Below, one piece after another: positions 9,097 to 64,000 of a stretch of 64,000 bases of DNA. The position numbers and the translations under genes are program-made. The notes beneath the pieces are model-generated. The model did no database searches, was not told where the DNA came from, and saw nothing but the letters and a program-made list of their open reading frames with translations. This stretch comes from Aplysia californica. Its lineage: Eukaryota. The stretch's first letter is position 1. Every line of letters begins with the position of its first letter. The stretch spans positions 40,175 through 104,174 of the forward strand of contig NW_004798611.1 in NCBI RefSeq assembly GCF_000002075.1, given 5' to 3'.

Positions 9097-12000
9097 CTAG
9101 AGGTGTTCCTGGAACTGGAAGGTCCCTAGATGGGAGAAGTCGGCCATGTGGTCGTGCTGTGGCTGTGGCTGTGGCTGTGGCTGATAGACGGAGTGCTCGG
9201 CTGTTGCCATGGTCGACCCAGCGGGTATCACCAGGACGGGCTGGGGGTGGGGCACGTGGTGTAGGTGGGAGGAGCTTGGGATAGACGGGGGAGGGGCAAA
9301 TGTCATGACAGATCCGTGAGGGGGAGGAGGAGGAGGCAGGCGGGAGGAGGGGAGGAGCAGCGTCTGCTGGGGAGGCGGGGCTTGTGGTGACGACAGCTGG
9401 TGTATCGCTGCATGACAGTCGGCCTCACGGGGCTCGTACTGGGACACCTGGGTGACCTCCGCTTGGGCGGCGGTGTGGACGTTAGCCAGGCTGACGGAGA
9501 TCACTTCACCGCGGGGATCTGACAGGACGGATGACGATCCACTGGAGTGGATGTCGTTCAGGTTCAGGCCCATACGGATAAAAAACTCCTCGGCTGTCAT
9601 GTCCCTCTCCAACCTGTGAGGCTCAAGACTTTCCTCCAATCTCCTCCCACCAGCTACGTGTGCTGTATTTTCTAAAACGACTCGATGTCTGTTGGAATAT
9701 TGCTGTGACTCGACTCCCACTCTATACGCTGAGCCGCAGTCTTCAACTCCTTTCTTGTACCCTGAGTCGGCTCCTCTCTTCTTACTTTCCTCGTGTCTCA
9801 CACTCACCACAGGAGCGGAGGAAGCACCCGGGCCTTGCCTCGTGTCTGTGAGCGTGGTGGGCGTGTCTGCGAGGGAGGTGGGCGTGTCGGTGAGGGTGGT
9901 GGGCGTGTCCTTGCTCGTCTCCACAATGGCGGAAGACTGAGCGGAGAAGGAATCTGTCTTGTCCTCTGCAGCTCCACTTCCTTTTTTCTTCTTTCCTTTC
10001 CCCTGAGCAGACGTGGTGGCCAGTTCCACGCTCCCTTCGGTCTCCCCGCTGTGATGTTTCTTCACATGTTCTCTCAGCTTGTCCACGCGACTCGAGGCGT
10101 ACTCGCACACGTCACATTTGTGGGCCCGCACCGCCGAGTGGGTGCGCTCGTGCCGGACCAGATGCGACCGTTCGATGAAAGCTTTGCTGCACACCTTACA
10201 CACGTGCTCCCGTATGCCGAGATGGCTGCGCATGTGCGCCTCCAGTTGAGAGCGTTTGGGCGTGGCGTACTTGCAGGAGGGGAAGTTACATCGGAACACA
10301 TCACCTGTCCAGCACATCAAAGGGGACAAACAAAAGGTGATGTTACTACATCTGAACAGATAACTCGTCAACATGGAGCATAAACTTAACTTTAGGAACA
10401 TCTACTGACACATACAATAAGAATATTTAGGATAAGTACAAAGACTCACTACTTTTCTTACGTGCTCTTTCACAGACAGATAAAGATAGTTTTAAAAGAT
10501 TTTTAAAACACCACTGTCAAAACTGGCCTCAGAGAAACAAACATTTTGAAATCATTTGCTGCAATCTCAGACTCCTATATGATAAAAAGAGTGGCAAAAA
10601 CATAAGCAATTTCATAAGAAAAAAGAGCATACAAATTTATACAAAAACCAAAAAAAAATTTTAAATGTCTTCAATTTAACAAGTACTGTAACTGACTTAA
10701 AAGAAATAGCATTCCACACTGACCCACATTTCTAAACAATCAATCAAATCTACCAAATAAAATGGCCCTATTCCTGGCAACTGTCTGATACAGTGATAGT
10801 CAAATTCATCTATCACTTTGTCCAAAAGTAACCAAACAAAATATATCATAAATTTCTTTTCCAATGTTTTACGACAATCTATGTTGTTCAGGACGTTTTC
10901 AAGAAAAATTCCTTGAAATGTGAAAAATCTACAAGAAACAAAAAACTTTTGAAAGTGCATGAAAAAGAAACATCAAATAGAATATCTTTGGCTACCAGCC
11001 TATTTGATTAATATTTAATCCACAACTTATAATTGACCAGTCAGTATCGTGCTCTGTATTTTTCAACTGTGAAGTATAAGAAGAAACAAGCTGGCCACCT
11101 GTGTGGATCTTTTTGTGCGCGATCAGATGAGACTGGAACTTGGTGGAGAAGCCACAGAGGTCACACAGGTAGGGTCGGAGGTCGCTGTGAGTGACCATGT
11201 GCTGGTCAAGCGTGTTCTTCAACTTGAACGTCCGGCTGCACTCAGGGCACTGGTATTTCTTCTCGTCTGAAGGTCGCAGTGAGGCGGGGAATGTGGGACA
11301 AGAGGGGGGAAAATAGAAGTAAGGACTAGGAGACGCCAGTCAAGTCAAAGAAAGTCTTCCTCCTTGCTGTTTGGTGTACATAAACAATGGATGAAGTGAA
11401 CCTTGCATCATTTCAGAGAACCCAAGCTGTAATTGCCATCCCTATTATTCCAACAAGTACACATTATTCCCCTCATCCTACTTATGAACAGAGTAAAAGC
11501 CTACTTCTTAAGCTCACTCTTTGTCAGAAACTGTTTACTTATGAAAAGAGTAAAAGCCTACTTCTTAAGCTCACTCTTTGTCAGAAACTGTTTTCACTGG
11601 TATTAAAAATGGAGACAGGACAAGAAAGCACACGGTCCTATTGGAGACGGACGTTAAACTAGGAGGTCCCACCCCTTAAATAACCTAAAAGTGTTGATAG
11701 GGGCGTTAAACCCATACCATTTCACCATTTTCAAGAAAGCACCGAGGTCGCGATCTGTTACCAAACAAACCCAAACAAACCCAAACAAACCAACCTGAAT
11801 GGTTTTTGATGTGTGCGTACAGATTGTTCCTTGTCCGGAAAGCCATGAGGCAAGAGCTGCAGACGTACGGCCGGTCGTCCGTGTGCTGGCGCCGATGAGT
11901 CAGGAGGGTTGCCATTTTGTCCGTACTGAAATGACAGTCTTCCCCGTCACAAAGGTACGGAGGACCTGGAAGTTGAAAGGAATTATCAAAGTTGGTGTAA

Positions 12001-14112
12001 CATTTTTTAATAGATTTTTTTGCACAAGGCACAATCCGACTCAACTGAAGCAGAAAGTAAAGAAGGAGCAAGAAAGCAAACTTCTGCCACGGATGATTCC
12101 CCGTAGACTAATCACACTGCCAGGGACTTTGCTCTCGCCAGTTTCTCGGGCAATAATTCTCACCACACAGAAAGGGTTTAAACAAAAGTTTATCAAACCA
12201 ATCACAGGAGAGTAGATGGGATCTCCGTCTATCACTCAACTTAATACAAGTCACAGGGCCCGCTTTTCCCAACTTGACCCAGAGCAACTTTCTCACAGAA
12301 CTTGAACCATAGGGTGACACAGTGACAGTGACAGTGACAGGGAAAACCCAGGATAATAGAGTCAAATTTTTTTTTCTCATAAATCCAAACAAAGATACGA
12401 ATGAGGAATTATAACGGCCAATGTCTGGTTCAGACAATTCTTCATGGTGATAATAATAGCCCACACATTTATCTCGCACCAATTTATTCCCTCAAAATAA
12501 TGGTCAGAGTGTCTGATGTGGTTCAAAAAGTTCATTTTTTACAATGTAGCTCTTCTACCTGTCCTGCCTACACTGTAACAGTTTCAAAACAAACGTAGCT
12601 CATAAAACATTGGCAAAGTTCAGTTGGAGGATGTAACGCTATATTGGACTAAACTTTTTAAGTGGAAGATTTTCTGAGGACTTTTGCGCTGCTTCCTCTT
12701 TTACCCTCAGCAACCTGTTTGAGTCTTCTATTCCTCAATCTATCTCTTGTTTAGCTACTTCAGAAGATTGTCCTTCTTAATTAAAAGCCAGTTCAATGAA
12801 GAAGAAAAGACCCAAAAAAATTTCTTTTTTTCAAACTAAAGAGAATTGCCTTTAAGCCATTTTTTGAAGTTAATGAAAAAAAAGACTCAAAATATTTCTT
12901 ACCCTGAAAGTGCTGCGACTTTAAGTGCTCGTTGAATTCCTTGTTCCACTTGCAGACAAAGTCACATAATGGACAGCGAAATGTTCCTTTACTCTCGTGA
13001 GCCTAAGCCAAAGAGAATACATCAGTGTTTCATAATGCTGCAATATTTCTAAAAACCTGTTAATCAGTCAAGCACATTTAACTTGAACATAAGTGATATA
13101 CAACTTGAAATCACAATCTTTGGATGAGTGTTAGGTCCATGCAATATTGTCTCTGTTTTAAGTCACAATCTTTGGATGAGTGTTAGCTCCATGCAATATT
13201 GTCTCTGTTTTAAGTTCTGCAAACCTAAAACGAAACAAACAAAAAAAAAAATATATATATATATATACAGGTAGAAAAAAAATCATGCCCTGAAAATCTG
13301 TTCACTGTGTGTGTGTGTTTCGCTAAGAGCATGTTCCCTGCATGTGTGCCAGATCGTATATCAAAATACAAAACATTTACACACAAATAAAGCTCCCAAT
13401 TCAAAGCTTTACGACAATTACCTTTTTCTTATGTTTGTCAAGTTCCACTTTGGTGTTGCAGGAAAAGCTACAAGTTGAGCACTTGAGTGTCCGTGGGGGC
13501 TCATCTTTGGTGAGTTTCTTAGTCGAGGAGGAGTCTTCTTGAGACAGCTCCTGTGACTTGAGTTTTGCAGAACTAGCTTCAACAGCTTTGCCTCCTTTCT
13601 TACTCTCTTCATACGCCTTGCTGGGAACTACTATTTGGAACAGAAATTGTTGTAGTTGCAGTGAAAGAAACCTTCCAAAGTGGATGTTCTGAACATACTA
13701 CAAAGATCAATTCATAAAACTCTATACACCTTGCGAGTACACGGTTAGGTTGTTGTAAATTTCCACGTGGCAGCACCCAGACAAAAACATCACTCAGCTC
13801 ATCTTTTTCTGTTACAAAATTCTACTTACAAGAATCATCTCAAAATTTGTTCCAAACATGACAATCTAACATAACCCTACAGAATCAAGCTAAGTAAGGA
13901 GGGGGGGGGGGGGGAACAATGACAACTCAAACAACCTAGATTTATGCTTAAAAATGCGCTCTATGTCATTTCAAACATGGCCATCTAGACTATCATACTA
14001 TGGTCTTGCTAGATAACACCTGAACTACTAACGGTGTGCCCTTGGCAATAAGTTGACAGTGACTGTACTATCCAGTGTTAAAAAATGAAAGCCCACGTAA
14101 TTGTCCTGACCC

Positions 14113-14174
<62 letters not shown>

Positions 14175-17100
14175 GTATATATATCGGTGTTCAGTCTTAC
14201 CCTTTGTTTGCCCCCTCTGTGGTCGACCCGAGGCCCGCAGACTGACAGTCCTGGTCTCATCAGACGTCACCTCCACAGATTCCGTCGTAACTTCCTTACG
14301 CTGCTCCCTAACCCTGGTGGACATTCTTGGAGCAATCGGGTCAGCTTTTGTCGTGATTGTCTTGGAACCTTTCCCCTTCCCATCACTAGAGGAGCTCAGA
14401 TCACCACTTCTAGCACTTCGGGTGTTGCTTCTAAGTATTTCTTGATCCGGTGGAGACTTCGACACTTCTTTGCTAACAGCTTTTTCCGTGCTCCTTTGAT
14501 TACTTTGAACAAGTTCAGATTTTCTTTTCTTTGCCTGTCTTGATGAGCTTGCTTTCTCTTCTTCTTTCTCAGTTTGTTCCTCGGTTGATATCAATCGACG
14601 GGGCAGTTTGAGTTTCCTTTTCATGCTTCCCCGAGAGCGATGTGCTCTTAGCGCGGGTTCACCAAGCGTGTCGCCCTTCTCATCTCGGCCACTGACGTCA
14701 GGCGAGTCCGTGTTGTCTTTGCTCGGTTCATGAGGCGACTCGCTCACACACTCTGGGGACTCCGTGACACTGATGGGCACTTTTTTCTTCCGACTTTTTG
14801 AAGTTTTCTGATCAGGTTGATCGACATCTGCAGAAACTTGAGGTTGCCGTGAGTGAGCCGAGTCAGCAGCCTGAAGCGTTGGTGAGTTTGAGATGACGGA
14901 TAAACTGACAGGGTGAAACACTTTGTGCCGACCGGAGCCCAGATCGACGATGCTGGTGACGACGCTGGAGAGGAGATAGCTGTACTGTTCTCGCAACGCC
15001 TCAAACTGGTCTGTGTACGGGCCCAGCGTGATGGCGGCCGAGTGCAGCGTCTGCAGCAACAGGTACAGCGACGATGGGTTGGAGGTGAAGAAGTTCTCCG
15101 TCTGGCTGATCTCCAGCAGGAAATCTTTGGCCACGACCTCCCAGTCCAGGTGACCCAGCAACAGAACCAAGTACTGCTGGCGTTTGGGGACGTCGCCGCG
15201 CAGCCAGGAAATGATCAGAAACAATTTCATCTCAGGATTCAACCTTGACACGTGGTGAGAACCCAGGAACGCGTTGAACTGCTCGGGAGCCAGGTCTCGG
15301 AAATCAGACTTCTGGACGGCATCGTCCAAATTCTCACCCAAGAATCTCACACAGCCAGACTCTAGATCTGAGAGCTGGAACTTAACGGCCAGGTGGAAAT
15401 GACTAATCACGTTATCGACAGTCGTGGTGCGGATCAAGTAGGTCTCACACATGGACCTCAGTATATGAACCTGTGGGGGAGGAAAAAAAGAAAGATAGAA
15501 GAAACACAAACCCGACCCAAAAGCAATAAAAGGACATTTTTTAGCACAGATGAAATTGTGTATTAATAAAAATAAAAGAACTACATAATAATACATCATC
15601 GTCATCATCATCATCCAGTGCCAGATCTGCGACAGACACCGGCGATCATGGTTCTCCATTCATTCCTTTGCTTGGATGCTCTCAGAAAAGCTACGTTTCC
15701 TTGATCTTTCCCTGTTACCCATTTGTTTAGGTTCCTCAAGTACGTTGTTTTGGGCCTTCCCCTGCTTCGCTTGCCCTCAATTTACATAAAACATGTGATT
15801 CATAATTTCACATTTGTTAATTCCAGGCAGTCATATTTTTCGGAGGATATATAAAGGTTGGTTTTTCTCTTCTTTCAAAATCTGTCAACTTTTTCGACAC
15901 TAGTACATGTATCCTCTCAATGAGGCAGCTTAGGCAATTACCTCTGTCAACTTTTTCGACACTAGTACATGTATCCTCTCAATGAGGCAGCTTAGGCAAT
16001 TACCTCAACATTGCACACATTCAAGTGTTTCCATTTTGTGTCCAAGAACCACTTCTCCTCTCTTTGCACACTAGGCCCTGCAGTCTTCTTACTTCATGAA
16101 GCACTATCCTATATTGGTACCACAAGTAGACAAGTATATATATTGGGTGACCTTATTTAGGCCATATGTGGCCTAAATAAGCTAAACCCCCCTCCCTTAC
16201 CTTGTGTAGGCCATATGTGGCCTAAATAAGCACTCTCATGTATATTACCACAAGTAGACGAGTATATATATTACCACAAGTAGACAAGTATATATATATA
16301 TTACATATGAAAAACTCACTTCTGACTAATAACAAAAATACCATAGAAAAAAAAGAAGAAGTCTACCTGGAAAGTTGAAGCCAACAGCAGCAACGTGGAT
16401 ATGTTGGACATGGCCTCCTCCAAAACTCCCGAGTACAGGAAGTTCAGGAAGCTCTGGAAGGCGTCGTGCTGGTCACATAACACACGTACGTGCTGCGTGG
16501 TGGCCACCCGCGGGTCCAGCATGTTCCTCATCACCGGGCTCCACACCACCAGAACAAGGCGGTGGGCATTGTACCGGGCACCACTCAGCTCAAACACCAG
16601 GTCACAGAACTCCTCACTCTAGGGAGGAAAGGGACATTTTGAAACTGGACAAAATTGTTTTTGATCAACTCAAATAACTGCCATTGTCTATACATTACTA
16701 ACAGGATGAACATACACCAGCGGGTTCAACAGATAGGCCCACACATTAACAAAGATAGCAAACACATACATCACAAAGTCAAACGAACATACACCAGCGG
16801 ATTTAACAGATAGGCACACACATACATCGCAAAGTCAAACGAACATACACCAGCGGGTTCAACAGATAGGCACACACATACATCGCAAAGTCAAACGAAC
16901 ATACACCAGCTGGTTCAACAGATAGGCCCACACATTAACAAAGATAGCAAACACATACATCACAAAGTCAAGCAGTGGGAAGAAAAGATGTGCAAATAAA
17001 TACAGGCTGCATAAGATCAAAAGAAAAGTTATGGTCTAAAAAAGACATTTCAGATAGACTGAAAACATAGAAGAACTTTCTAAAGAATGTGACAGAAGCA

Positions 17101-17433
17101 AAACCTCACTCTCACTGACTCTCAGCCTGGCTTGGCCCCAACATGTGTGTAAAAGCAGCCTGCCTCCTACATTATTTTAAATATGTCCATTTTGGATATA
17201 AAACAGGTACAATCTACAGTTTTGCAGTGCCATTGAATGAAAGAGCAAAGGTTTTATTTTCAGTCAGTCAATGACATGTAACATTATTAGCAGATTAAAA
17301 AATTTCACAACTAAACAACTTGTCTACTTTTGTTCTAAAGAATCAGAACACTCACCTCTTTTAAAGCACATAATTTATTGATGAGAAAAGAATGTGGTGG
17401 TGAATCGCACAGAGGTAGAATGTCGCTCTGCAT
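9097..17433 (-). CDS. BTB-BACK domain protein with nine C2H2 zinc fingers, ~1151 aa; complement(join(9097..10304,11099..11266,11795..11965,12903..13002,13422..13630,14201..15470,16367..16618,17356..17433))
   Basis: BTB motif ([34 protein letters not shown]...[11 protein letters not shown]). BACK-like segment ([30 protein letters not shown]...[15 protein letters not shown]). Nine C2H2 fingers with TDDRPY/SDLRPY-type linkers. All junctions are GT-AG and phase-compatible, totalling 3456 nt. The start codon at 17433 is the least certain element. Confidence 0.85.
14118..14170. repeat. (AT)n microsatellite
   Basis: Perfect dinucleotide run. Confidence 0.95.
15594..15783 (-). mobile_element. RTE-clade LINE 3' end
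   Basis: Reverse strand encodes [17 protein letters not shown]...RNEWRTMIA, a typical RTE ORF C-terminus, followed by a (GAT)n tail. Confidence 0.75.
16708..16971 (+). repeat. ~50-bp tandem repeat (GAACATACACCAGCGGGTTCAACAGATAGGC...), 4 copies
   Basis: Direct repeats in a BTB-ZF intron. Confidence 0.9.
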
Positions 17434-18090
17434 CCTCAAGCTGTGAAAGTAGAAGAGGCACAGTGTTGAGTTGTTCCACAGTCTTTCTGTCGCTACATCT
17501 GTCTCGCAGATATGAGATAATCTCTGCCAGAATTTGATATTCTTTACAGTTCTGGGGAAAACAAGAAACATAGATATAATAAAAATTAATCACTGCTATT
17601 TATAAGCATTCGCTGAGTCCTGAAAAAAAGCTCAAATACCTGACAATCTCAGTCATAATAATGAGTGTTGGAGAAGAATTCTTGGTCTCTGACAAAATTA
17701 CAAAAGATAGTGAAAATAAGGTTGAATAGAAACGATAGAAATCAGTCTGTACGTGGTGACAGCGGAGATTGTCATGGAAGGAAAAGAAATCAAACAAAGT
17801 AGTGCTAGAAGAAGCTAGCTGGTGGTGGGGTACGCTGACAAATGAAAAAAACAAAATTAAGAAGAGACAAACGCAGACACTTGTTTGAGTTTAGTTGGGT
17901 TGTTTGTTTGTCTTTTTGTTTCGAGCATTTGGGCAGAGAAAAAAGTGGCAAACCAGGAAGTGAAGAAAGCCAACAATGTCTGTTCAGATCACGCTGCACT
18001 TATCATGATGATGTTTCTCCAGTTGAACAGGAAGAAATAATAGAGACTCGTACAATTCGGCGACAGTTTCATAAACAAAACGTGTTGAAC

Positions 18091-18528
18091 TAGCTAGTTC
18101 TGCCACACAGGTAGGAATATATATATATATGTATTTAATAATAACGTGATAAACCATTTCTCGTTGTCTAAGTTGGCTAGTTCTGCCACACAGGTAGGAA
18201 TATATGTATTAGTAATAATGTTATAAACCATTTCCCGTTACCCGTTGTCTAACACAGGTAGGAATATAGGTATTAGTAATAACGTTATAAACCATTTCCC
18301 GTTACCCGTTGTCTAACACAGGTAGGAATATATGTATTAGTAATAACGTGATAAACCATTTCCCGATGTCGAAGTTGGCTAGTTCTGCCACACAGGTAGG
18401 AATATAGGTATTAGTAATAACGTGATAAACCATTTCCCGATGTCGAAGTTGGCTAGTTCTGCCACACAGGTAGGAATATAGGTATTAGTAATAACGGTAT
18501 AAACCATTTCCCGATGTCGAAGTTGGCT
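18091..18528 (+). repeat. ~60-70-bp tandem repeat (ACACAGGTAGGAATATA..TAGTAATAACG..ATAAACCATTTCCC), ~6 copies
   Basis: Direct repeats. Confidence 0.9.
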
Positions 18529-18799
18529 CTGCTCGGAGAAGGAAGCGATAAGCGAAAACGTGGATTTGTTTACAAACAAACCTAGTTCCAAATGGTTGGT
18601 CCATTTAATCACGTGGTACAAGATGGCATGGGGGACAGGGGGAAAATGATCCAACACGGAAATAGGGAAGAAAGTGGTCGTAAATTCGGAAAATGGGTCT
18701 AAAATTGATATGAGATGCTGAATCTTGCAGTAAAACCCTTAAGTCAAAAGTGTATATCACAGAAATACAAAATTGACGTGAAATCACGAAGCCCAGCAA

Positions 18800-18930
18800 A
18801 CATACCGGTCGGGAAAGGGTGGCTGTATCTTGATATGTTCCCCAGGCCAGACATGATGGACCGGCACAGTCACGTGACCTCCCCCTGCTGGACGGGCAGG
18901 TTTCCTCAAGGCGACATGTTGCCGGTTTTG
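18800..18930 (-). promoter_or_regulatory. Putative promoter / non-coding first exon of the BTB-BACK-ZF gene
   Basis: Local CpG-rich patch, palindromic E-box GTCACGTGAC at 18869-18878, and a minus-strand donor CCG|GTATGT at 18805. Confidence 0.45.
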
Positions 18931-19289
18931 CTCGTCAATCATTTTGTGAACGGTTCTGGGTGTATAGTTAATTTATTTATTTATTTTATAAAATGTGAAA
19001 ATAAATGAATCACATTACATTCACAACGTTTCCAGAACCAAATACCTCAGGCCCGAGACATACTAGATCTAGGATCGTTTAGTATTGGCTTTTAAAATTC
19101 ATCATGTAGTCTAAATGACCTGTAATATGAGCCACCTTTATATTACATGTATGTGCAAAAAATACAAGTGCCGGCACACTACATGTAAGCCTACATAATT
19201 ATATGATTAATACCACAATAGGTACAGTATATACGATATAGGCCTCATTAAAAAATTGCAATACCGTTAACTTGCAGCGCGCGCGTTGG

Positions 19290-19777: not shown

Positions 19778-22700
19778 GATGTAGAAAATAGTGTGGATGA
19801 TGTAGAAAATAGTGTGGATGATGTAGAAAATAGTGTGGATGATGTAGAAAAAAGTTGGGATGATCTAGGAAAAAAGTTGGGATGATGTTGAAAAAAGTGT
19901 GGTAGATTTAGAAAATAGTGGGGATGATGTNNNNNNNNNNNNNNNNNNNNNNNNNNNNNNNNNNNNNNNNNNNNNNNNNNNNNNNNNNNNNNNNNNNNNN
20001 NNNNNNNNNNNNNNNNNNNNNNNNNNNNNNNNNNNNNNNNNNNNNNNNNNNNNNNNNNNNNNNNNNNNNNNNNNNNNNNNNNNNNNNNNNNNNNNNNNNN
20101 NNNNNNNNNNNNNNNNNNNNNNNNNNNNNNNNNNNNNNNNNNNNNNNNNNNNNNNNNNNNNNNNNNNNNNNNNNNNNNNNNNNNNNNNNNNNNNNNNNNN
20201 NNNNNNNNNNNNNNNNNNNNNNNNNNNNNNNNNNNNNNNNNNNNNNNNNNNNNNNNNNNNNNNNNNNNNNNNNNNNNNNNNNNNNNNNNNNNNNNNNNNN
20301 NNNNNNNNNNNNNNNNNNNNNNNNNNNNNNNNNNNNNNNNNNNNNNNNNNNNNNNNNNNNNNNNNNNNNNNNNNNNNNNNNNNNNNNNNNNNNNNNNNNN
20401 NNNNNNNNNNNNNNNNNNNNNNNNNNNNNNNNNNNNNNNNNNNNNNNNNNNNNNNNNNNNNNNNNNNNNNNATGATGTTAAAAAAGTGCTGTTGATTTAG
20501 AAAATAGTCGAGATGATGTAGAAAATAGTGGGGATGATGTAGACAAAAGTAGGGATGATGTAGAAAGTAGTGCAAGTTTATTTGACAATACTGGGGGTGA
20601 TTTTGAAAATAGTGGGTATGATGTAGAAAATAGTATGGATGATGTAGGAAAAAGTTGTTTTAAAAAAAGGAAATAATGTAGAAAAAATTGGTGATGATGT
20701 AGGAAATAGTGTGGATGAGCTAAAAAAAAAATGTGGTTGATATAGGAAAAAAGTTGGGATGATTTTGAAAAAAGTGTGTTTGATGTAGAAAATAGTGGGG
20801 ATGATGTAAGAAAAAGTGTGGCTTATGTAGAAAATAGTGGGGATGATGTAAGAAAAAGTGTGGTTGATGTAGAAAATAGTGTGGAATGATGTAAGAAAAA
20901 GTGTGGCTTATGTAGAAAATAGTGGGGATGATGTAGAAAATAGTGTGGAATGATGTAAGAAAAAGTGTGGCTTATGTAGAAAATAGTGGGGATGATGTAA
21001 GAAAAAGTGTGGTTGATGTAGAAAATAGTGTGGAATGATGTAAGAAAAAGTGTGGCTTATGTAGAAAATAGTGTGGAATGATGTAAGAAAAAGTGTGGCT
21101 TATGTAGAAAATAGTGGGGATGATGTAGAAAATAGTGGGGATCAGCTAGAAAAATTTGTGGTTGATGTAGAAAAAATGGGAATCGATGTAGAAAATAGTG
21201 GGGAAGATGTAAAAAAAAAAGAAGGAAATTATGTAGAACAAAAGTGTGGATGATGTAGAAAAAAGTGTGGTTGATGTAGAAAATAGTGTGGATGATGTAG
21301 AAAATAGTGTGGATGATGTAGAAAACAATGGCGGTTATATAGAAAATAAAAAGGAGGAAATTATGTCGTAGAAAAAGTGTGGATGATGTAGTAAATAGTG
21401 TGGATCAGCGAGAAAAAAGTGTGGTTGAAGTAGGAAAAAAGTTTGGATAATTTTTTTTTAAAGTGTGGCTTATGTAGAAAATATGGGGATGATGTAGAAA
21501 ATAGTGGGGATGATGTAGAAAATAGTGGGGATGATGTAGAAAATAGTGTGGATGATGTAGAAAATAGTGTGGATGATGTAGAAAACAATGGCGGTTATAT
21601 AGAAAATAAAAAGGAGGAAATTATGTCGTAGAAAAAGTGTGGATGATGTAGTAAATAGTGTGGATCAGCGAGAAAAAAGTGTGGTTGAAGTAGGAAAAAA
21701 GTTTGGATAATTTTTTTTTAAAGTGTGGCTTATGTAGAAAATATGGGGATGATGTAGAAAATAGTGGGGATGATGTAGAAAATAGTGGGGATGATGTAGA
21801 AAAAAGTGTGGTTGATGTAGAAAAAAAAAATGGGGAAAATGTAGAAAAAAATGTGGTTGATGTAGAAAAAACTGTGGATGACGTAGGAACAAGTGTGGTA
21901 AATGTAGAAAAAAAGTGGGGATGATGTAAGAAAATGTGTGGCTTATATTGAAAAAAGTGTGGTTTATGTAGAAAATAGTTGGGATAAAGTTACGAAAAGT
22001 GTGTCTTATGTACAGAAAAGTTGTGTTGATGTTGAAAAAAGTGTGGTGGATATAGAAAAATGTTTTGATGATGCAGAAAAGGTTTGGATAATGTAGAAAA
22101 AGTGTGGTTGATGTAGGAAATAAGTTGGGATGATGTAGTAAAAAGTGTGGTTGATGTAAAAAATAGTTGGAATAATGTAAGAAAAAGTGTGGCTTCTGTA
22201 GAAAAAAAATAGGGATGATGTTAAAAAAGTGCTGTTGATTTAGAAAATAGTCGAGATGATGTAGAAAATAGTGGGGGTTATGTAGACAAAAGTAGGGATG
22301 ATGTAGAAAATAGTGTGATTGATGTAGAAAATAGTTGCAATGGTGTGGAAAACATTGATGATGATATAAGAAAATGTGTGACTTATGAAGATAAAGTTTG
22401 GATAATGTAAAAAAAAGTTGGGATAAGGTAAGAAAAACTGTGGCTTATGTAGAAAAAAGTGGGGGATGATGTGTAAAATAGTGTGGCTTATGTACAACAA
22501 AGTGGAGATGATTCAGAAAAAAGTTTGGATGATGTACAGTTAGAAAATAGTGTGGGGATAATGTAGAAAATGGTGTAAGTGTATTTGACAATATTAAGGG
22601 TGATGTTCAAAATAGTGAGGATGACGAATGAAAAAGTGTTGTTGATTTAGAAAATAGTCGAGATGATGTAGAAAATAGTGGGGGTTATGTAGACAAAAGT

Positions 22701-25700
22701 AGGGATGATGTAGGAAAAAAGTGTGGTTGATGTAAAAAAAAATAAAGGAAATGATGTAGAAAAAAGTGTGGTTGATGTAGGAAAAAAGTTGGGATTATGT
22801 AGTAAAAAGTGTGGTAGATGTAGAAAATAGTGGGGATAATGAAGAAAATAGTGGGGATGATGTGGAAAATAGTAAGGATGATCTAGAATAAAATGTGGTT
22901 GATGTAGAAAATAGTTGGGATAATTTGGAAAAAAGTGTGGTTGAAGTAGAAAAAGTGGGGATGATGTAGAAAATTATGTGGTTGATGTAGGAAAAAAGTT
23001 TGGATGATGTAGAAAATAGTTGGGATAATGTAAAAAAAAGTCAGGATGATGAAAAAAGAAGTGTGGCTTATGCAAAAAAAAGGGGAGAAGATGTAAGTAA
23101 AAATAGTAGAGCGATGTAGAAAAAAGTAGGGGAAGATGCAGAAAAAAGTGTGGTTCATTTAGAAAAAATGGGGATTGATGTAGAAAATTGTTGGGATGAT
23201 GTACAAAATAGTGGGGATGATGGAAGAAAAAGTGTGGCTTATGTAGAAAAGGTTTGGATAATGTATAAACAAGTGTGGTTGATGTAGAAAAAATGGGAAT
23301 CGATGTAGAAAATAGTGGGGAAGATGTTAAAAAAAAAGGAAATTATGTAGTAAAAAAAGTGTGGATGATGTAGAAAATAGTGTGGATGAGCAAGAAAAAA
23401 GTGTGGTTGATGTAGGAAAAAAGTTGGGATGATGTAGAAAAAGTTTGGCTTGTGTAGAAAAAAGGGGATGATGTAGAAAATAGTGTGGATGATGTAGAAA
23501 ATAGTGGGGATGATGTAAAAAAAAGTGGGGATGATGTAGAAAATAGTGGGGATGATGTAAAAAATAGTGGGGATGATGTAGAAAATAGTGGGAATGATGT
23601 AAAAAATAGTTGGGATGATGTACAAAAGAGTGGGGATGATGTAGAAAATAGTGGGGATGATGTAGAAAATAGTTGGGATGATGTAGAAAAAAGTGGGGAT
23701 GATGTAAAAAATAGTGGGGATGATATAGAAAATAGTTTGGATGGTGTAGAAAATAGTGGGGATGATGTAGAAAATAGTGGGGATGATGTAGAAAATAGTG
23801 GGGATGATGTAGAAAATAGTGGGGATGATGTAGAAAATAGTGTAAATGATTTTGACAATACTGGGGGTGATGTTGAAAATAGTGCGAATGATGTAAAAAA
23901 AATACTAGGGATTATGTAGAAAATATAGTGGATGATGTAGAAATGAGTGTGGTTGATGCAGGAAAAAAGTTGGGATGATGTAGTAAAAAGTGTGGTAGAA
24001 GTAGAAAATAGTGGGAATAATGCAGAAAAAAGTGGGGATGATGTAGAAAATAGTGTTGATGATGTAAGAAAATGTGTGGCTTATGTAGAAAAAAGTGAGA
24101 ATGATGTAGGAAAAAGTGTGGATGATCTAGAACAAAGTGGGGATGATGTAAATAAATTGTGGGGATGATGCAGAAAAAAGTGGGGATGATGTAGAAAGTA
24201 GTGCAAGTGATTTTGACAATACTGGGGGTGATTTTGAAAATAGTGGGGATGATATAGAAAACAGTATGGATAATGTAGGAAAAAGTGTTGTTGATGTATA
24301 AAATAGTGTGGATGATAAAGAAAAAGTGTGATTAATGTAGAAAATAGTTGGGATAATGTAAGAAAAGGTGTTGATGATGTAGGAAAAAAGTTTGAATGAT
24401 GTTGAAAAAAGTGTGGTAGATGTAGAATACAGTGGGGATAATGTGGAAAACAGTGCAAGTGATGTTGACAATACATGTGCTGGGAGTTATGTTGAAAATA
24501 GTGGGAATGATGCAGAAAAAAGTGGGGGTGATGTACAGTTAGAAAATAGAGGCGATAATGTAGAAAATAGTGTAAGTGATGTTAAGAATACTGGGGGTGA
24601 TGTGGAAAATAGTGTGGATGATTTAAAAAATAATGATGATGATGTAAGAAAAAGTGTGGCTTAAGTAGAAAAAAGTTTGGATAATAGGGAGCATTAGAAA
24701 ATATCTATCTGTTGGTGTCACCAAAACTTTAATAACATCACTTATATTGTCAAGGATTGATTATTGCNNNNNNNNNNNNNNNNNNNNNNNNNNNNNNNNN
24801 NNNNNNNNNNNNNNNNNNNNNNNNNNNNNNNNNNNNNNNNNNNNNNNNNNNNNNNNNNNNNNNNNNNCGTATGTGTGCATGTGAGTATGTATGTGTGTGT
24901 GGTGCGTGCATGAGTGAATATGTGTTTGCATGAGTATGTAACACTATGTACCTTTAAAATTGATTTGTAAATCCATTATATGTATCACGTTAAGCGCATA
25001 GAGCATTGCATAAGTGGATATGCGCTATATAAATGCAATCCATTATTATTTTATGTAAAAAATAGTGGGGATGATGTAGAAATAAGTGTGGCTTATGTAG
25101 AAAAAGTGTTGATGATTAAGAAAAAAGTTTGTCTGATATATATATAAAAAAAAGTAAGGATGATGTATAAACAAGTGTGGTTGATGTAGAAATTAGTGTG
25201 GATGATCTAGAAAGAAATGGGAATGATGTAAATAAATAGTGGGGATTATGTAGAAAATAGTGGGGATGATGTAGAAAATAGTGGGGATGATGTAGAAAAA
25301 AGTAGGGGTGATGCACAGTTAGAAAATAGTGGGAATAATGTAGAAAATAGTGTAAGCGATTTTGGATATACTGGCGGTGATGTTGAAAATAGTGAGGATG
25401 ATGAAAGAACAAGTTTGGTTTATGTAGAAAAAGGGGGATCATGTAGAAATTAGTGCGAATGATGTAAAAAAAAACCTAGGGATTATGTAGAAAATATAGT
25501 GGATGATGTTGAAATAAGTGTGGTTGATGTGGGGAAAAAGTTGGGATGATGTAGTAAAAACTGTGGTAGATGTAGAAAATAGTGGGGATGATGTGGAAAA
25601 TAATGTGGGATGATCTAGAACAAAGTGGGGATGATGTAAATGAAAAGTGGGGACTATGCAGAAAAAAAAGTTTGGCTGATGTAGAAAAAATTTGGGGAGA

Positions 25701-27872
25701 TGTACAGTGAGAAAATAGTGGGGATAATGTATAAAAAAAAGGGGAGATATGGTATAAAAAAAAGTGTGGTTAAAGTAGAAAATAATTGGGGTAATGTAAG
25801 AAAAAGTGTGGATTAATATGTAGAAAATAGTGGGGGTGATGTAGAAAATAGTTGGGATGATGTAAAAAAAGTGAGTATGATGTGGAAAATAGTGGGGATG
25901 ATGTGGAAAACAGTGGTGATGATGTGGAAAATAGTTTGGATGATCTAAAACAAAGTGGGGATGATGTAAAAAATAGTGCTAGTGATTTTGGCAATACTGG
26001 GAGTGATGTTGGAAATAGTGTGGTTGATGTAGAAATAAGTGGGGATGATGTTGAAAAAGCTGGGGATGATGTAGAAAAATGTGTGAATGATGTAGAAAAA
26101 AAGTGGGGATGATGTAGAAAAAAGTGGGTATGATGTAAAAAAAAGTGTGGTTTGATGTAGAAAAAATGTAGTTGATGTAGAAAATACTTGGGATAATGTA
26201 AGAAAAACTGTGGCTTATGTAGAAATAACTGTAGAGTGTAGGAACAAACGTGGTAAATGTTGAAAAAAAGTATGGATGATGTAGAAGCAAAATGTGAGGC
26301 AGCGTGGTGGAATCAGGCTCTCGTCAAAATAATGAAATCGAAGAAAACAGCAGTTTTCTCCCTGCTTAGCAATTTTTATCAAATTTTTGTTTTTTGGCTC
26401 AACACCTTTTATGTCAATTTACAAACACATTCTTTGAGAATTTCACAGAAAACGTTAATTAAAGGCACAAAAATATAAAATTTACAGTTTCCATGGACTC
26501 TCCAGCTTTGGAATTTACCAAGTTTGGCGGCCATTTTCTCGCTAATTTTACCTCATAAACCAGGTGACCCCCACCTCCTTCAATCCAAAATATCTCCACT
26601 TCTATTGAAGATGGGCGGGTAATTTTTTCTTTGAAAGCAAAACAAATGAACAAGCTTTAATATGTGGGGATGATGTAGAAAATAGTGGGGCGGGTGTAGA
26701 AAATAGTGGGGATGATGTAGAAAATAGTGGGGATGATGTAGAAAATAGTGGGGATGATGTAGAAAATAGTGGGGATGATGTAGAAAATAGTGGGGGTGAT
26801 GTAGAAAATAGTGGGGATGATGTAGAAAATAGTGGGGATGATGTAGAAAATAGTGGGGATGATGTAGAAAATAGTGGGGATGATGTAGAAAATAGTGGGG
26901 ATAATGAAGAAAATAGTGTTGATGATGTAGAAAAAAGTGTGGTTGATGTACAAAATAGTGGGGATGATGTAGAAAAAGTTTGGCTTATGCAAAAAAAAGC
27001 GAGAAAATGTAAGTTAAAAAAAGTTGGGATGATGTAGAAAAAGTTTGGATAATGTATAAACAAGTGTTGTTGATGTTGAAAAAAGTGGGGATGATGTTGA
27101 AAATAGTGGTGATGATGTGGAAAACAGTGGTGATGATGTGGAAAATAGTGTGGATGATCTAAAAAAAAGTGGTGATGATGTAAAAAATAGTGCTAGTGAT
27201 TTTGGCAATACTGGGAGTGATGTTGAAAATAGTGGCGATGATGCAGAAAATAGTGTGGTTGATGTAGAAATAAGTGGGGATGATGTTGAAAAAGCTGGGG
27301 ATGATGTAGAAAATATTTGGGATAATGTAAGAAAAACTGTGTCTTGTGCAGAAATAACTGTAGAATGTAGGAACAAATGTGGTAAATGTTGAAAAAAAAA
27401 GTGAGGATGATGTAGAAAAAAATGTGGTTCATGTAGAAAAAAGTGTGGTTGATCTAGGAAAAAAGTGGTGTTGATGTAAGAAAAAGTGTGGTCTATGTAG
27501 AAAAAAAAGTAGGGATGATGTATAAACAAGTATGGTTGATGTAGAAAAAGTGGGGATAATGTGGAAAAAAGTGTGTTAGATGTAAAAATAGTGGTGATGA
27601 TGTGGAAAAAAATGTAGTTGATGTAAATAAAAAGTGGGAATAATGTAGAAAAGAATGTGGTTGATGTAGAAAAAAATGTGGTAAATGTAGAAAAAAAAGT
27701 GGGGATGATGTAAAAAAATAGTGGATGATGTAGAAAAAAGTGGGGATGATGTAGAAAAAAGTGCGGATGTAGCAGAAAATAGTGGGGATGAAGTATAAAA
27801 ATGTTGGGATGATGTAAGAAAATAGTAGGGTTGATGAAGATAAAATGTGGATGGTGTAGAAAATAGTGGGGA
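19778..27872 (+). repeat. Satellite A, 21-bp unit GATGATGTAGAAAATAGTGGG
   Basis: Hundreds of degenerate tandem units, interrupted by N gaps (19931-20471, 24768-24867), non-array sequence at ~24690-25050 and a MITE at 26292-26658. Confidence 0.97.
26292..26658. mobile_element. Truncated copy of the same MITE inserted in satellite A
   Basis: Aligns by eye along its whole length to the reverse complement of ~45770-46136, and interrupts the 21-bp array. Confidence 0.75.
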
Positions 27873-51230: not shown

Positions 51231-54200
51231 GGGGATGAGCTAGAAAATATTACGGATGAAGTAAAAAATACGAAAGATGAGCTAGAAAATATTGTGCATG
51301 AGCTAAAAAAAATACTTGAGATGAGTTAGAAAATATTACAGACGAGCTAGAAAATACTGGGAATGAGCTAGAAAATATTACGGATGAAATAGAAAATACG
51401 AGATATGGTCTAGAAAAGATTATGCTTAAGTTATAAAATACTGGGGATAAGTTAGAAATATTATGGATGAACTAGAAAATACTGGGAATGAGCTAGAAAA
51501 TATTTGGGAGGTGCTACAAAATATTGGGTATGTGATAAAAATATTGGGGATCAGTTAGAGAATATAAAGGATTTAAAAATATTGGGAATAAGAATAAAAA
51601 AATCTCGTGGATGAGATACAGAAGTCCAGGAAATATTTGGAAGGAGCTTAAAGTACTGGGGATGAGCTTAAAAATATTATTGATCAGCTATGAATTATTG
51701 GGGATAAAGTAGAAAATGCTAAAAAATACTGGGGATGAGTTAGAAAATATTACGGATGAGCTACAAAAGTCCAGGAAAATATTTGGAAGGAGCTTAAAAT
51801 ACTGGGGATGATCTAAAAAATACTACGGTTGAGCTAGAAATTATTAGGGATAAAGCAGAAAATGCTAAAAAATACGGGGGATGAACTAGAAAATATTATG
51901 GATAACCTAAAAAATACTGAGGATGAGCTAGGAAATTTTACGGATGAGATAAAAATACTGGGGATGAGCTAGAAAATATTACGGATGAGCTAGAAAATAT
52001 TAGGAATGAGGTAGAAAATATTGTTTGAGGTGCTAAAAAATATTTAGGATGTGATAAAATGTAGTGGGGAAAAGCTGGAAAATATTAAAGATAAAAAAAA
52101 TAATTTTAATTGGGAATAAGATTTAAAAAATGTGGATGAGATACAAAAGTCCTGGAAATATTTGGGGTGAGCTAAAAATATTGGAAATGAGCTAGTAAAT
52201 ATAATGGATGAGCTACAAATTATTGGGGATGAAGTAGAAAATGCTAGAAAATACTGGGGATGAGCAAGAAAATATTACAGATGAGCTAGAAAATACTGGG
52301 GATGAGCTAGAAAATATTTGAGAAGGGCTGCAATATTGGGGATGTGGTAAAAAGTATTTGGGATGAGCTAGAAAATATAAGTGATCTAAAAATATTGGGA
52401 ATAAAATAAAATACTGTTTTGGATGAGATACTTTAAGTCCTGAAAACATTGGGCATGAGCTAAAAATTATTGATGATGAGCCGAAAAATACTGGTAGCTA
52501 AAAAATACTGGGATTGAGCTAGAAAATATTACAGATGAGCTAAAAAATAATGGGGATGAGCTAGAAAATATTACAGATGAAGTAGAAAATACGAAAGATG
52601 AGCTAGAAAATATTGTGCATGAGCTAAAAAATACTGGAGATGAGTTAGAAAATATTACAGCGACGAGCTAGAAATTTCGGGGAATGAGCTAGAAGATATT
52701 ACAGAAGAAATAGAAAATACGAGATATGAGCTAGAAAATATTACAGAAGAAATAGAAAATACGAGATATGAGCTAGAAAATACTGGGGATAAGTTAGACA
52801 ATATTATTGATGAACTAAAAAGTACTGGGAATGAGCTAAAAATATTTGGGAGGTGCTACAAAATGTTGGGTATGTGATAAAAATATTGGGGATCAGATAG
52901 AATATTTATATTATTAATGAATATTGGGAATAAGATTTTTTTTTGTTAATTGTGGATGAGATACAGAAGTCCAGGAATTATTTGGAAGGAGATAAAAGTA
53001 CTGGGGATGAGCTTTAAAATATTATTGATCAGCTACAAATGATTGGGGATGAAGTAGAAAATGCTAGAAAATACTGGGAGGTGCTAGAAAATATTACAGA
53101 CAAGCTAGAAAATACTGGGGATTAGCTAGAAAAAATATTACGGATGAGCTAGAAAATACTGGGAATGAGCAAGGATATATTACCGATAAGCTAGAAATTT
53201 TTGGGAACGAGCTAGAAAATATTTCGGATGAGTTAAAAAATACTGGGGATGAGTTAGAAAATACTGGGAATGGGCTAGAAAATATTTGGGAGGGGCTACA
53301 AAATATTGGGAATGTGATAAAAAGTATTTGGGATGAGCAAGGAAATATAAGGAATCTAAAAATATTGGGAATACGATAAAATAATTTTGTGGATGAGATG
53401 CAAAAGTCCTGGAAATATTTGAGATGAGCTAAAAATAGTGGGGGTTGAGCTAGAAAATATTACGCATAAGCTAGAAAATACTGGGGATGAACTAGAAAAT
53501 ATTACAGGTGAGCTAAGAAATACTGGGGATGAGCTAGAAAACATCACAGATGAGCTAGGAAATACTGGGGATGAGCTAAAACATATTTGGGAGGGGCTAC
53601 AAAATATTGGGGATGTGGTAAAAAGTATTTGAGATGAGCTAGAAAATATAAGAGATCTAAAAAATATTTAGGGTAAAATAAAATAATGTTTTGAATGGGA
53701 TACAGAAGTCCTGGAAACATTGGGCATGAGCTAAAAGTTATTGAAGATGAGCCGAAAAATACTGGAGATGAGCTAGAAAATGTTACGGATGAGCTAGAAA
53801 TTATTTTGGATAAAGTATAAAATACTTGATATAAGCTAAACAAATATCGGGGATGAGCTAGAAAATATTACGGATGAGCTAGCAATTATTAAGGATGAAG
53901 TAGAAAATGCTAAAATATACTGGGTATCAGCTTGAAAATATTACAGCTGAGCTAGAAAATACTGGGATTGAGCCTGTAAATATTACAGAAAAGCTAGATA
54001 ATAATGGGGATGAGCTAGAAAAAAATATACAGATGAGCTAAGAAATGAATGAGCTAGAAAATTTTTGGGAGGTGCTAGAAAATACTGGGAATGAGCTAGA
54101 AAATATTTGGGAGGTGGTACGAAAATATTTTGGATGTGATAAAACATATTGGCGATGAGCTAGAAACTATTAAGGATCTAAAAATATTGGGAATAACATT

Positions 54201-57200
54201 TAAAAAATGTTGTGCAAGAGATACGAAAGTCCTAGAAATATTGTGGGGATCAGCCCAAAAATACTGGAGAAGGGCTAGAAAATATTGCGGATGAGCTAGA
54301 AATTATTACGGTTTAAGTAAAAGATACTGGAGATGAGCTAGAAAATACTAGGGATGCGTTTAAATAATATTACAGATGTGCTAAAAAAAATATTGGGGAT
54401 GAGCTAGAAAATATTAAGGATCTAAACATATTGGGAAAAAGAAGAAAAATAATGTTGTGGAAGAGGTACAAAAGTCCTGGAAATATTGGGGATGCGCTAA
54501 AAATACTGGGGATCAGCTAGAAATCATTAGGGATGAAGTAGAAAATACTGGAAATGAGCTAGAAAAAACTGGAGATGAACTTTAAAAATTTGGGATGAGC
54601 TAGAAAATACTGATGATGAGTTTAAAGATATTACAGATGTGATAGAAAATACCAGGAATGAGATAGAAAATATTTGGGAGGTGTAACAAAATTATTTTGG
54701 ATGTGATAAAAAATATTGGCGATGAGTAGGAAAATATTAAGGATCTAAAAAAATTGTGAAAATATTTAAAAAGTGTTGTGCAAGAGATACAAAAGTCCGG
54801 GAAATATTGGGGATCAGCCCAAAAATACAGGTGACAGGCTAGAAAATAGTATGGATGAGCTAGAAATTATTACGGTTGAAGTAAACAATACTGGAGATGA
54901 GCTTGGAAATACTGGGGAGGAGCTAGAAAATATTACGGATGAGCTAGAAAATACTGGGGATGAGCTTAAAAAATATTACAGATGTGATAGTAAATACTGG
55001 GAATGAGCTAGAAAATATTTGGTAGGTGCTACAAAATATTGGGGATGTGATAAAAAATATTGGCGATGAGCTAGAAAATATGAAGGATCTAAAACTATTG
55101 GGAAAAAGAAAAGTAAATAATGTTGTAGATGAGATACAAAAGTCCAGGATATATTTGGGATGAGCCCAAAAATACTGGAGATTTGCAAGAAAATAAAACG
55201 GATGAGCTAGAATTATTACGGAAGAAGTAAAAAATACTGGATAGGAGCTAGAAAATACTGGGAATGAGCTAGAAAATATTACTGATGAGCTAGAAAATTC
55301 TGGGGATGAGTTTAAAAAATATTACAAATGTTATAGATAATACTAAGAATGGGCTAGAAAATATTTGGGAGGTGCTGCAAAATATTTTGGATGTGATAAA
55401 AAATATTGGCGATGAGCTAGAAAATATTAAGGATCTAAAGATATTGGGAATAAGACCCAAAAGATGATGTTGTAGGTGAGATTTTCAATGATTTGGAAAG
55501 ATTGGGGATGAGCTAAAAATACTGTGAATGAGCTAGAAAATATTACGGATGAGCTAGAAATCAGTGGGGATGAATTATAAAATACTGGAGATCAGTTAGA
55601 AAATACTGGGGAAGAACGATAAATTTTTTCAGATGCGCTAGAAAATATTACGGATGAGCTAGAAAATACTGGGAATGAAATAAAAAATATTTGGGAGGTG
55701 CTATAAAATACTGGTGACGTGTTAAAAATGTTTGGGGATGAGCTAGAAAATATTAATGATCTAAAAATATTGGGAATAAGACCAAACAAAAGTCCTGGAT
55801 ATATTTGGGATGCGCTAAAAATACTGGGGATGAGTCAGAGAATATTACGGATGAGGTAGAAATTATTAGGGATTAAATAGAAAATACTAGAGATGAGCTA
55901 GAAAATACTTGGGATGAACTAGAAAATATTTCAGATGAGTAAGAAAATATTGGGGATGAGTTTAAAAAATATTACAGATATGACAGAAAGTTCTAGGAAT
56001 GAGATAGAAAATATTTGAGTGGAGGTACAAAATATTTTGGATGTGGTAAAATATATTGGCGATGAGCTAGAAAATATTACGGATCTAAAAATATTGTGAA
56101 TAACATTTTTAAAATGTTGTGCAAGAGATACAAAAATCCTGGAAATATTGTGGGGATCAGCCCAAAAGTACTGGAGAAGGGCTAGAAAATATTATGGGTG
56201 AGCTAGAAATTATTAGGGTTGGAGTAGAAAATACTGGAGATGAGCTAGAAAATACTAGTGATGACCTAGAAAATATTACGGATGAGCTAGAATATACTGG
56301 GGATGAGTTTAAAAAATATTACAGATGTGATTGAAAATACTGGGAATGAGCTAGGAAATATTTGGGAGGTGCTACAAAATATTGGTGATGTGCTAAAAAT
56401 TATGGAAGATGAGCTAAAAACAATTTCTTTAATGGTAATAAGATCAAATATAATGTTGTGGATGAGATACTAAAGTCCTCGAAATATTGGGGATGCGCTA
56501 AAAATACTGGAGATGAGCTAGAAAATATTACGGATGAGCTAGACATTATTATGGATGAAGTAGAAAATACTGGAGATGAGCTAGAAAATACTGGGGATGA
56601 ACAAGAACATTTTTCAGATGAGCTAGAAAATATTACTGATGAGCTAGAAAATACTGGGGGTGAGGTTAAAAAATATTATAGGTGTGATAGAAAATATTGG
56701 GAATGAGCTAGGAAATATTTGGGAGGTGCTACAAAGTATTTTAGATAAAATGATAAAAATATTGACAATGAGCTAGAAAATACTAAGGATCTAAAAAATA
56801 TTGTGAATAACAATTAAAAAATGTTGTGCAAGAGATACAAAAGTTCTGGAAATATTGGGGATGAGCTAAAAATACTGGGGATGAGCTAGAAAATATTAGG
56901 GATGAATTAGACAATACTCGAAATGAGCTAGAAAATAGTGGGAATGAGCTTGAAAATGTTACGGATGAGCTAGATAATACTGAGAATGAGTTACAAAATG
57001 TTTGAAAGGTTCTAGAAAATATTGGTGATGTGTTAAAAATTATTGGGGATGAGCTAGAAAATATCAATGATCTAAAAATATTTGGAATAAGACCAAAAAA
57101 TGTTATGGATGAGATACAAAAGTCCTGGATATATTTGGGAGGCGCTAGAAATACTGCAGATGAGCTAGAAATTATTAGGGATGAAGTAGAAAATACTGGA

Positions 57201-63200: not shown

Positions 63201-64000
63201 TATTGGAGATGAGCTAGAAAATATTAAGGATCTAGAAATAAATAATGTTGTGGATGAGATACAAAAATCCTGGATATATTTAGGATGAGTTAAACATACT
63301 GAAGTGAGCTAGAAAATAAGATGGATCAGCAAAAGGTTTTTATGGATGAAGTAGAAAATGATAGAACTTTTTCTGGATGAGCCAAAAAATATTACGATGA
63401 GCTAGAAAATACTAGGAATGAGCTAGAAAATATTACTGATGAGCTAGAAAATACTGTGAATGAGCTAGAAAATATTTGGGAGGTGCTACGAAGCATTTTG
63501 GATGAGATAAAAAATATTGGCGATGAGCTAGACATTATTAAGGATCAAAACATATTGGGAGTTAATGTTGTGGATGAGATACAAAAGTCCAGGAAATATT
63601 GGGGATGTACCCAAAAATACTGGAGATGGGCTAGAAAATATAACGGATGAGCTAGAATTACTACGGAAGATGTAAAAAATACTGGAGATGAACTAGAAAA
63701 TACTGGGGATGAGTTTAAAAAATATTACAAATGTGATAGAAAATACTTGGAAGGAGCTAGAAAATATTTGGGAGGTGCTACAAAATATTGGGGATGAGCT
63801 AGAAAATATTAAGGATCTAAAAATATTGGGAAAAAGATTTAAAAAATAACGTTGCTGATGAGATTTCCAAAGTCCTGGAAATATTTGGGAAGCACTATAA
63901 AAATACTGTTGATGAGTTACAAAATATTACGGATGAGCTAGAAACTATTAGGGATGAAGTAGAAAATACTGGAGATGAGCTAGAATATACTGGGGATGAA
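51228..64000 (+). repeat. Satellite B, 21-bp unit GATGAGCTAGAAAATACTGGG with higher-order structure
   Basis: Continuous array to the end of the window, with a recurrent landmark GATGAGATACAAAAGTCCTGGA. Confidence 0.97.

Follow-up and report, generated by a model that had tools for sequence, protein, structure and literature searches.

Caenorhabditis elegans EOR-1 is a BTB protein with nine C2H2 zinc fingers and a polyglutamine region, which acts together with its binding partner EOR-2 and also takes part, alongside cohesin and SWI/SNF, in the fate and maturation of neurons; chromatin immunoprecipitation sequencing in the worm found it on a dimeric GAGA-type motif, and this motif predicts chromatin opening in development. 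A 2026 preprint draws domain schemes of human PLZF, EOR-1 and TRA-4, adapted from publications of 2004-2010, and the legend to its Fig. 6A names BACK as one of the domains shown; although the legend itself is silent on which of the proteins owns the domain, we would read it as belonging to EOR-1, because Pfam finds BACK in proteins that bear the EOR-1 name. No discussion of a role for the BACK domain in EOR-1 was found in the literature searched. In KLHL3, SPOP and KLHL11, the largest contact with Cullin-3 (Cul3) is made by a phi-x-E motif in the alpha3-beta4 loop, to which the 3-box of the BACK region adds affinity. Here, we describe LOC101862921, a gene contained in a stretch of 64,000 nucleotides (the window) from Aplysia californica (contig NW_004798611.1, positions 40,175 to 104,174), which is a previously unnamed member of the EOR-1 family and which we consider, with good confidence, to be the single-copy Aplysia orthologue of this family of protostome transcription factors, with the role proposed below.

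LOC101862921 is a single gene on the minus strand (9097-18942), encoding a BTB domain, a BACK domain, a disordered linker, nine C2H2 fingers and a Pro/His/Gln-rich tail. Each exon was searched on its own, and the complete product is represented by the database protein P0165, the A. californica RefSeq entry 'uncharacterized protein LOC101862921' of 1,235 residues, to which the exons of the window are 100% identical, as is the 215-residue BACK piece of exon 3. The 927 Mb genome holds one copy; the sole other match to the BACK piece was weak and unrelated (E 8e-6). In P0165, Pfam places BTB at residues 109-209 (66.2 bits), BACK at 217-316 and the fingers at 668-921, and found no Kelch families, the fingers standing in that place.

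The domain order proposed in the initial annotation was borne out throughout. The exon at 16365-16618 matches the BTB family PF00651 (E 2.5e-12), and directly after it the start of the exon at 14201-15468 matches BACK (PF07707) with 39.6 bits against a curated cut-off of 20.9 (E 5.8e-10). The fold is backed by an AlphaFold model of the BACK piece, with a predicted local distance difference test score (pLDDT) of 87 and helical hairpins up to residue 177, the top structural matches of which were KBTBD4 (Z 10.7), KLHL11-Cul3 (Z 9.6, 140 residues aligned), SPOP and the solution structure of the KBTBD4 BACK domain. The linker is rich in Ser, Lys, Glu and Arg (17, 13, 10 and 9%, respectively) and contains the basic runs RKKK and KKRK, which resemble nuclear localisation signals; the nine fingers are distributed over five exons, with successive offsets in P0165 of 29, 29, 30, 28, 28, 27, 30 and 28 residues; and the last 106 residues of the tail contain 22% Pro, 11% His and 11% Gln. 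In the AlphaFold model of the Physella orthologue, BTB-BACK (residues 30-325) has a pLDDT of about 90, the nine fingers adopt the beta-beta-alpha form, and linker and tail are disordered, with a pLDDT of 30-40 in the part equivalent to the Aplysia linker. Foldseek matched the head of this model to the KLHL11 BTB-BACK, KBTBD2-CUL3 and gigaxonin structures, and the finger array best to the DNA-bound arrays of ZFP568 and CTCF.

When all of 1.84 billion representatives were scanned by HMMER with the BACK piece as the query, 31 clusters scored below 1e-30, the full-length matches coming from molluscs, the annelid Owenia, ticks, spiders, a copepod, a mantis shrimp, a damselfly and nematodes. About 30 clusters combine BTB, BACK and nine fingers, and these come from molluscs, an annelid, a priapulid, chelicerates, crustaceans, hemimetabolous insects and nematodes. 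All of the full-length matches (about 900-1,300 residues) have BTB, BACK and fingers according to Pfam, and the spacing of the fingers is common to orthologues from five phyla, within one or two residues of that in P0165. With a 22-row family alignment as the query, almost only molluscs were returned (40 of 8,000 scored candidates at E <= 1e-10), and Atlas searches gave generic BACK or ZBTB clusters only. Some family matches of 600-710 residues from metagenome or Logan contigs, P0014, P0019, P0048, P0060 and similar ones, end after finger 4; these are probably single-exon open reading frame (ORF) calls cut at an intron and not a short paralogue.

The nematode members connect this family with the described protein. 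The member from N. brasiliensis is labelled 'EOR-1 (inferred by orthology to a C. elegans protein)', and a search with it returned CBR-EOR-1, CBN-EOR-1 and the EOR-1 proteins of Trichostrongylus and Parascaris, under the names given by their sources, followed by proteins of Priapulus, chelicerates, hemimetabolous insects and an ostracod, nearly all with precomputed BTB, BACK and finger domains. BACK scores above the Pfam cut-off in both C. briggsae CBR-EOR-1 (27.9 bits) and Parascaris EOR-1 (32.8 bits), and BTB, BACK and fingers are found by Pfam in P0165, in these two proteins and in 19 further family members. No characterised protein with this architecture had been recognised in the initial annotation; nematode EOR-1 has BTB, BACK and nine fingers, and the architecture is thus that of an already described family.

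Every exon of the window is colinear with every orthologue, including the N. brasiliensis EOR-1, in which BTB pairs with residues 39-118, BACK with 123-284 and the fingers with 471-704, the last three fingers being 58% identical. The Aplysia protein and the nematode EOR-1 proteins share a BTB domain with BACK directly after it, a linker, nine fingers of the same spacing and a Q/P-rich C-terminus. In a careful maximum-likelihood analysis with IQ-TREE (289 BTB-BACK columns, 45 proteins), all 30 of the 30 finger-bearing proteins, Aplysia and the named EOR-1 proteins among them, fell into one clade with an ultrafast bootstrap value of 100 and a Shimodaira-Hasegawa-like approximate likelihood ratio test (SH-aLRT) value of 99, with the bootstrap, as the program warned, not quite settled; inside this clade the molluscs, and likewise the three rows named EOR-1, were grouped at 100/100. 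The recognition helices of fingers 7, 8 and 9 are near-identical, reading KRSQLEA, ERSHLVR and RVDKLRE in Aplysia and KKSQLAA, EKSHLVR and RRDKLKE in nematode EOR-1; the helices of fingers 5-9 are nearly alike in Aplysia and Parascaris, and those of fingers 7-9 also match C. briggsae.

Several observations weigh against a simple transfer of the nematode description to Aplysia. Fingers 1-4 diverge more from nematode EOR-1 than do fingers 5-9, and the DNA motif of the Aplysia protein may therefore not be identical to that of EOR-1. BTB-BACK is only about 26% identical between Aplysia and nematode EOR-1, and the molluscan BTB-BACK lies on a long branch (1.19 changes per column), so that contacts with cofactors may have changed; the Aplysia alpha3-beta4 loop lacks the K-E conserved in the rest of the family, and the Aplysia linker and tail are longer. 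The genetics, the EOR-2 partner and the DNA motif have been described for the worm side only. Finally, the full BACK domain has been kept for more than 500 million years, without explanation in an EOR-1-type model.

With these reservations, we propose the following role for the Aplysia protein, modelled on that of EOR-1. Members of the family begin with a KLHL11-like BTB-BACK head and continue through a disordered linker into nine C2H2 fingers and a low-complexity tail of putative activation type. The nine fingers would bind a specific DNA sequence, probably one close to the dimeric GAGA-type motif of C. elegans EOR-1, and the BTB domain, from what is known of its family, would make the protein a homodimer. 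The BTB-BACK surface may recruit cofactors, as EOR-1 works with EOR-2 and chromatin remodellers, and the protein would probably act as a chromatin-opening activator or as a repressor downstream of signalling, rather than mainly as a ubiquitin-ligase adaptor. The initial annotation had suggested that the fingers might instead serve as a substrate receptor, and this now appears unlikely: the recognition helices are conserved across phyla, which favours a conserved DNA target over a role in binding proteins, and the Physella array, as noted, resembles zinc fingers on DNA. With this assignment, an 'uncharacterized' gene acquires a name and a function that can be tested, and a classic model of neurobiology acquires an EOR-1 orthologue; the family itself occurs across protostome phyla and always carries a complete KLHL11-type BACK.

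EOR-1 is termed the PLZF orthologue in the literature, and PLZF and EOR-1 both have an N-terminal BTB domain and nine C-terminal C2H2 fingers, from which it might be supposed that the family is strictly orthologous to vertebrate PLZF/ZBTB16 and that BACK was lost in the vertebrates. The Aplysia protein does resemble the vertebrate ZBTB proteins in having a BTB head and a C-terminal C2H2 array (nine fingers in PLZF), and in being, presumably, a dimeric DNA-binding regulator, but ZBTB proteins are without the 3-box and BACK extension that it possesses. A PDB sequence search with the BTB exon alone could not separate the types, ZBTB17/NAC1, ZBTB9, SPOP and KLHL22 scoring similarly weakly. Over BTB-BACK, however, the family profile matches KLHL11 (E 2e-52) and KLHL3 (E 2e-46) end to end and ZBTB17 over the BTB domain only, in agreement with the KLHL-like N-terminal module of the initial annotation. 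When the slowly evolving BTB-BACK of Owenia was used as the query in word-filtered searches, all of the BTB-BACK-finger matches were from protostomes, and the first deuterostome matches were KLHL11 proteins with Kelch repeats from a hemichordate and amphioxus; neither these searches nor the Atlas searches turned up a chordate protein with BTB, BACK and fingers. From the chordates, the Atlas search yielded no more than generic ZBTB clusters (0.93, fewer than 160 shared features), among which PLZF was not singled out.

Of the proteins outside the family, KLHL11 also scores highest against the family profile and lies closest by path length in the tree. Because it is the nearest outsider by search, by profile score and by tree path, the comparison suggests a KLHL11-like gene as the source of the family head, and also that the 'PLZF orthologue' label of EOR-1 is loose and, in a comparison outside which the sequences of PLZF and Drosophila CG6792 lie, without support from the BTB-BACK evidence. 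The customary label is thereby put in question, and we regard strict orthology to PLZF as unlikely.

The same resemblance bears on whether the protein could be a Cullin-3 adaptor tethered to DNA, the KLHL-type BTB-BACK binding CUL3 as in KLHL11 or KLHL3 and the fingers placing the ligase at chromatin or capturing substrates. The whole BTB-3-box-BACK module has been kept, BACK is conserved in all of the family members examined, and the likeness to KLHL11, and also to KLHL3, KBTBD2/4 and gigaxonin, consists of the same fold and domain order over roughly the N-terminal 300 residues, including the 3-box and the full BACK. Among solved structures the head is best matched by KLHL11, of which crystals with Cul3 have been obtained and which is also the nearest relative in sequence outside the family; in KLHL3 and SPOP, BTB and BACK each add to the binding of Cul3. 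The Aplysia protein differs from KLHL11 in that the Kelch propeller is replaced by the disordered linker and nine fingers, and in that it lacks the phi-x-E contact motif. In KLHL proteins the alpha3-beta4 loop contains M-x-E, and the E85A mutation of KLHL3 abolishes measurable Cul3 binding; in Aplysia, the alignment of this loop is uncertain by about two residues, and no register puts a glutamate there, nor is one present in other heterobranch gastropods.

Members outside the molluscs conserve a different motif, K-[MVI]-H-[RK]-x-V-K-E, and their loop is shorter by two residues; by alignment the heterobranchs, Aplysia included, have neither this motif nor M-x-E. Because there is no glutamate where KLHL proteins carry phi-x-E, the sequence comparison leans against canonical binding of CUL3 in Aplysia. 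Furthermore, the known obligate partner of EOR-1 is EOR-2, and in the literature searched EOR-1 and CUL-3 occur together in one paper only, which names EOR-1 a single time and, by these counts, is apparently not concerned with an interaction. We therefore hold a DNA-tethered Cullin-3 adaptor to be quite improbable. A wider form of the idea, which we would put at similarly long odds, is that the EOR-1 family as a whole is a KLHL11-like Cullin-3 adaptor head fused to a nine-finger array, kept across the protostomes and not orthologous to PLZF, the head of which may still bind CUL3 in at least the non-mollusc members; were the head to do so, EOR-1 would be a sequence-targeted chromatin ubiquitin ligase.

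That a BTB-BACK gene and a zinc-finger gene were read as one in error, for which nothing speaks beyond the large introns between the exons, is refuted by a spliced contig that links six consecutive exons through canonical splice sites and opposed by separate gene models of at least five phyla with the same colinear architecture, leaving this explanation with practically no likelihood. Four public runs (X1, X3, X23 and X24) were aligned to positions 11000-16700 (5,701 letters). Contig record 1 of run X1, of 2,422 nucleotides at a depth of 47.5 and free of mismatches at the joins, consists of the segments 16620-16365, 15468-14201, 13630-13421, 13001-12901, 11963-11795 and 11266-11096, and covers the exons from the BTB exon to that of fingers 5-6. 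All of the stretches that it skips end in CT..AC on the plus strand, which is GT..AG on the minus strand, and, although the RNA label of the run is a guess, we take the contig to be complementary DNA because it is intron-less with canonical GT..AG joints. Run X3 covers the same region with introns retained and behaves as DNA; the raw polyadenylated RNA runs X23 and X24 have almost no reads over the exons and are uninformative on splicing. The BTB, BACK and finger exons belong to one gene and one spliced mRNA, as the initial annotation had supposed in joining the BACK exon to the finger exons.

The exons, all on the minus strand, divide the protein as follows. Exon 1 (17356-17559), followed immediately by a GT donor at its 17356 end, encodes the helix ahead of the BTB core, and exon 2 (16365-16618), placed by the Pfam match and the contig joint 15468/16365, encodes the core itself. 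The first 178 codons of exon 3 (14937-15468) encode the 3-box and the helical hairpins of BACK, as judged from the PF07707 match (at about 15108-15407), the model and the structural matches, and reach to the end of the region that lies ahead of the Kelch propeller in KLHL proteins; the remainder of the exon (14201-14936) encodes the linker, assigned from its composition and from the pLDDT of the Physella orthologue. Exon 4 (13421-13630), defined by the joints 13630/14201 and 13001/13421, completes the linker and opens finger 1. The spliced contig gives exon 5 (12901-13001; the end of finger 1, and finger 2), exon 6 (11795-11963; fingers 3 and 4) and exon 7 (11096-11266; fingers 5 and 6), the last of which is 86-89% identical to its counterparts in Physella and Lymnaea. 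Exon 8 (9097-10308), identified by tblastn, encodes fingers 7-9, the disordered tail with its terminal Pro/His/Gln-rich stretch and the stop codon; it corresponds to residues 833-1235 of P0165 at 100% identity, and its upper boundary is precise to a few bases.

The initial annotation began the protein at the ATG at 17433; this codon is Met86 of P0165, as the RefSeq model begins further upstream, and either start may be the one in use. A tblastn search of the window with P0165 recovers all of the exons together with the longer form of exon 1 (17356-17559) and an upstream coding exon (18799-18942), which encodes residues 1-48 and belongs to RefSeq isoform X2 only. The match of the family profile on P0165 begins at residue 97, leaving the extra 85 N-terminal residues (17434-17559 and 18799-18942) unmatched, and nothing matching them was found in the orthologues. 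These residues of isoform X2 may be 5' untranslated region taken as coding sequence, and translation of the upstream exon is uncertain.

In both runs, the contig word depth reaches 10^5-10^6 over three intronic stretches of the gene, 11573-11763, 15584-15774 and 16157-16347, which attract RNA reads as well; each is probably a copy of a highly abundant interspersed repeat. A (TA)n microsatellite at 14107-14185 lies within an intron, a few bases past the donor of exon 3, and reads appear to be cut there.

Elsewhere in the window, there are two arrays of degenerate 21-bp units (60-75% matches), at 20472-27872 (about 7 kb) and 52156-63808 (about 12 kb), with similar units (…GAAAATA.TGGGGATGA…) and a strong skew of G over C on the plus strand. 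They look like non-coding satellite, because the plus strand of both contains no ORF of 250 residues or more. Gaps of N occupy 19931-20471 and 24768-24867.

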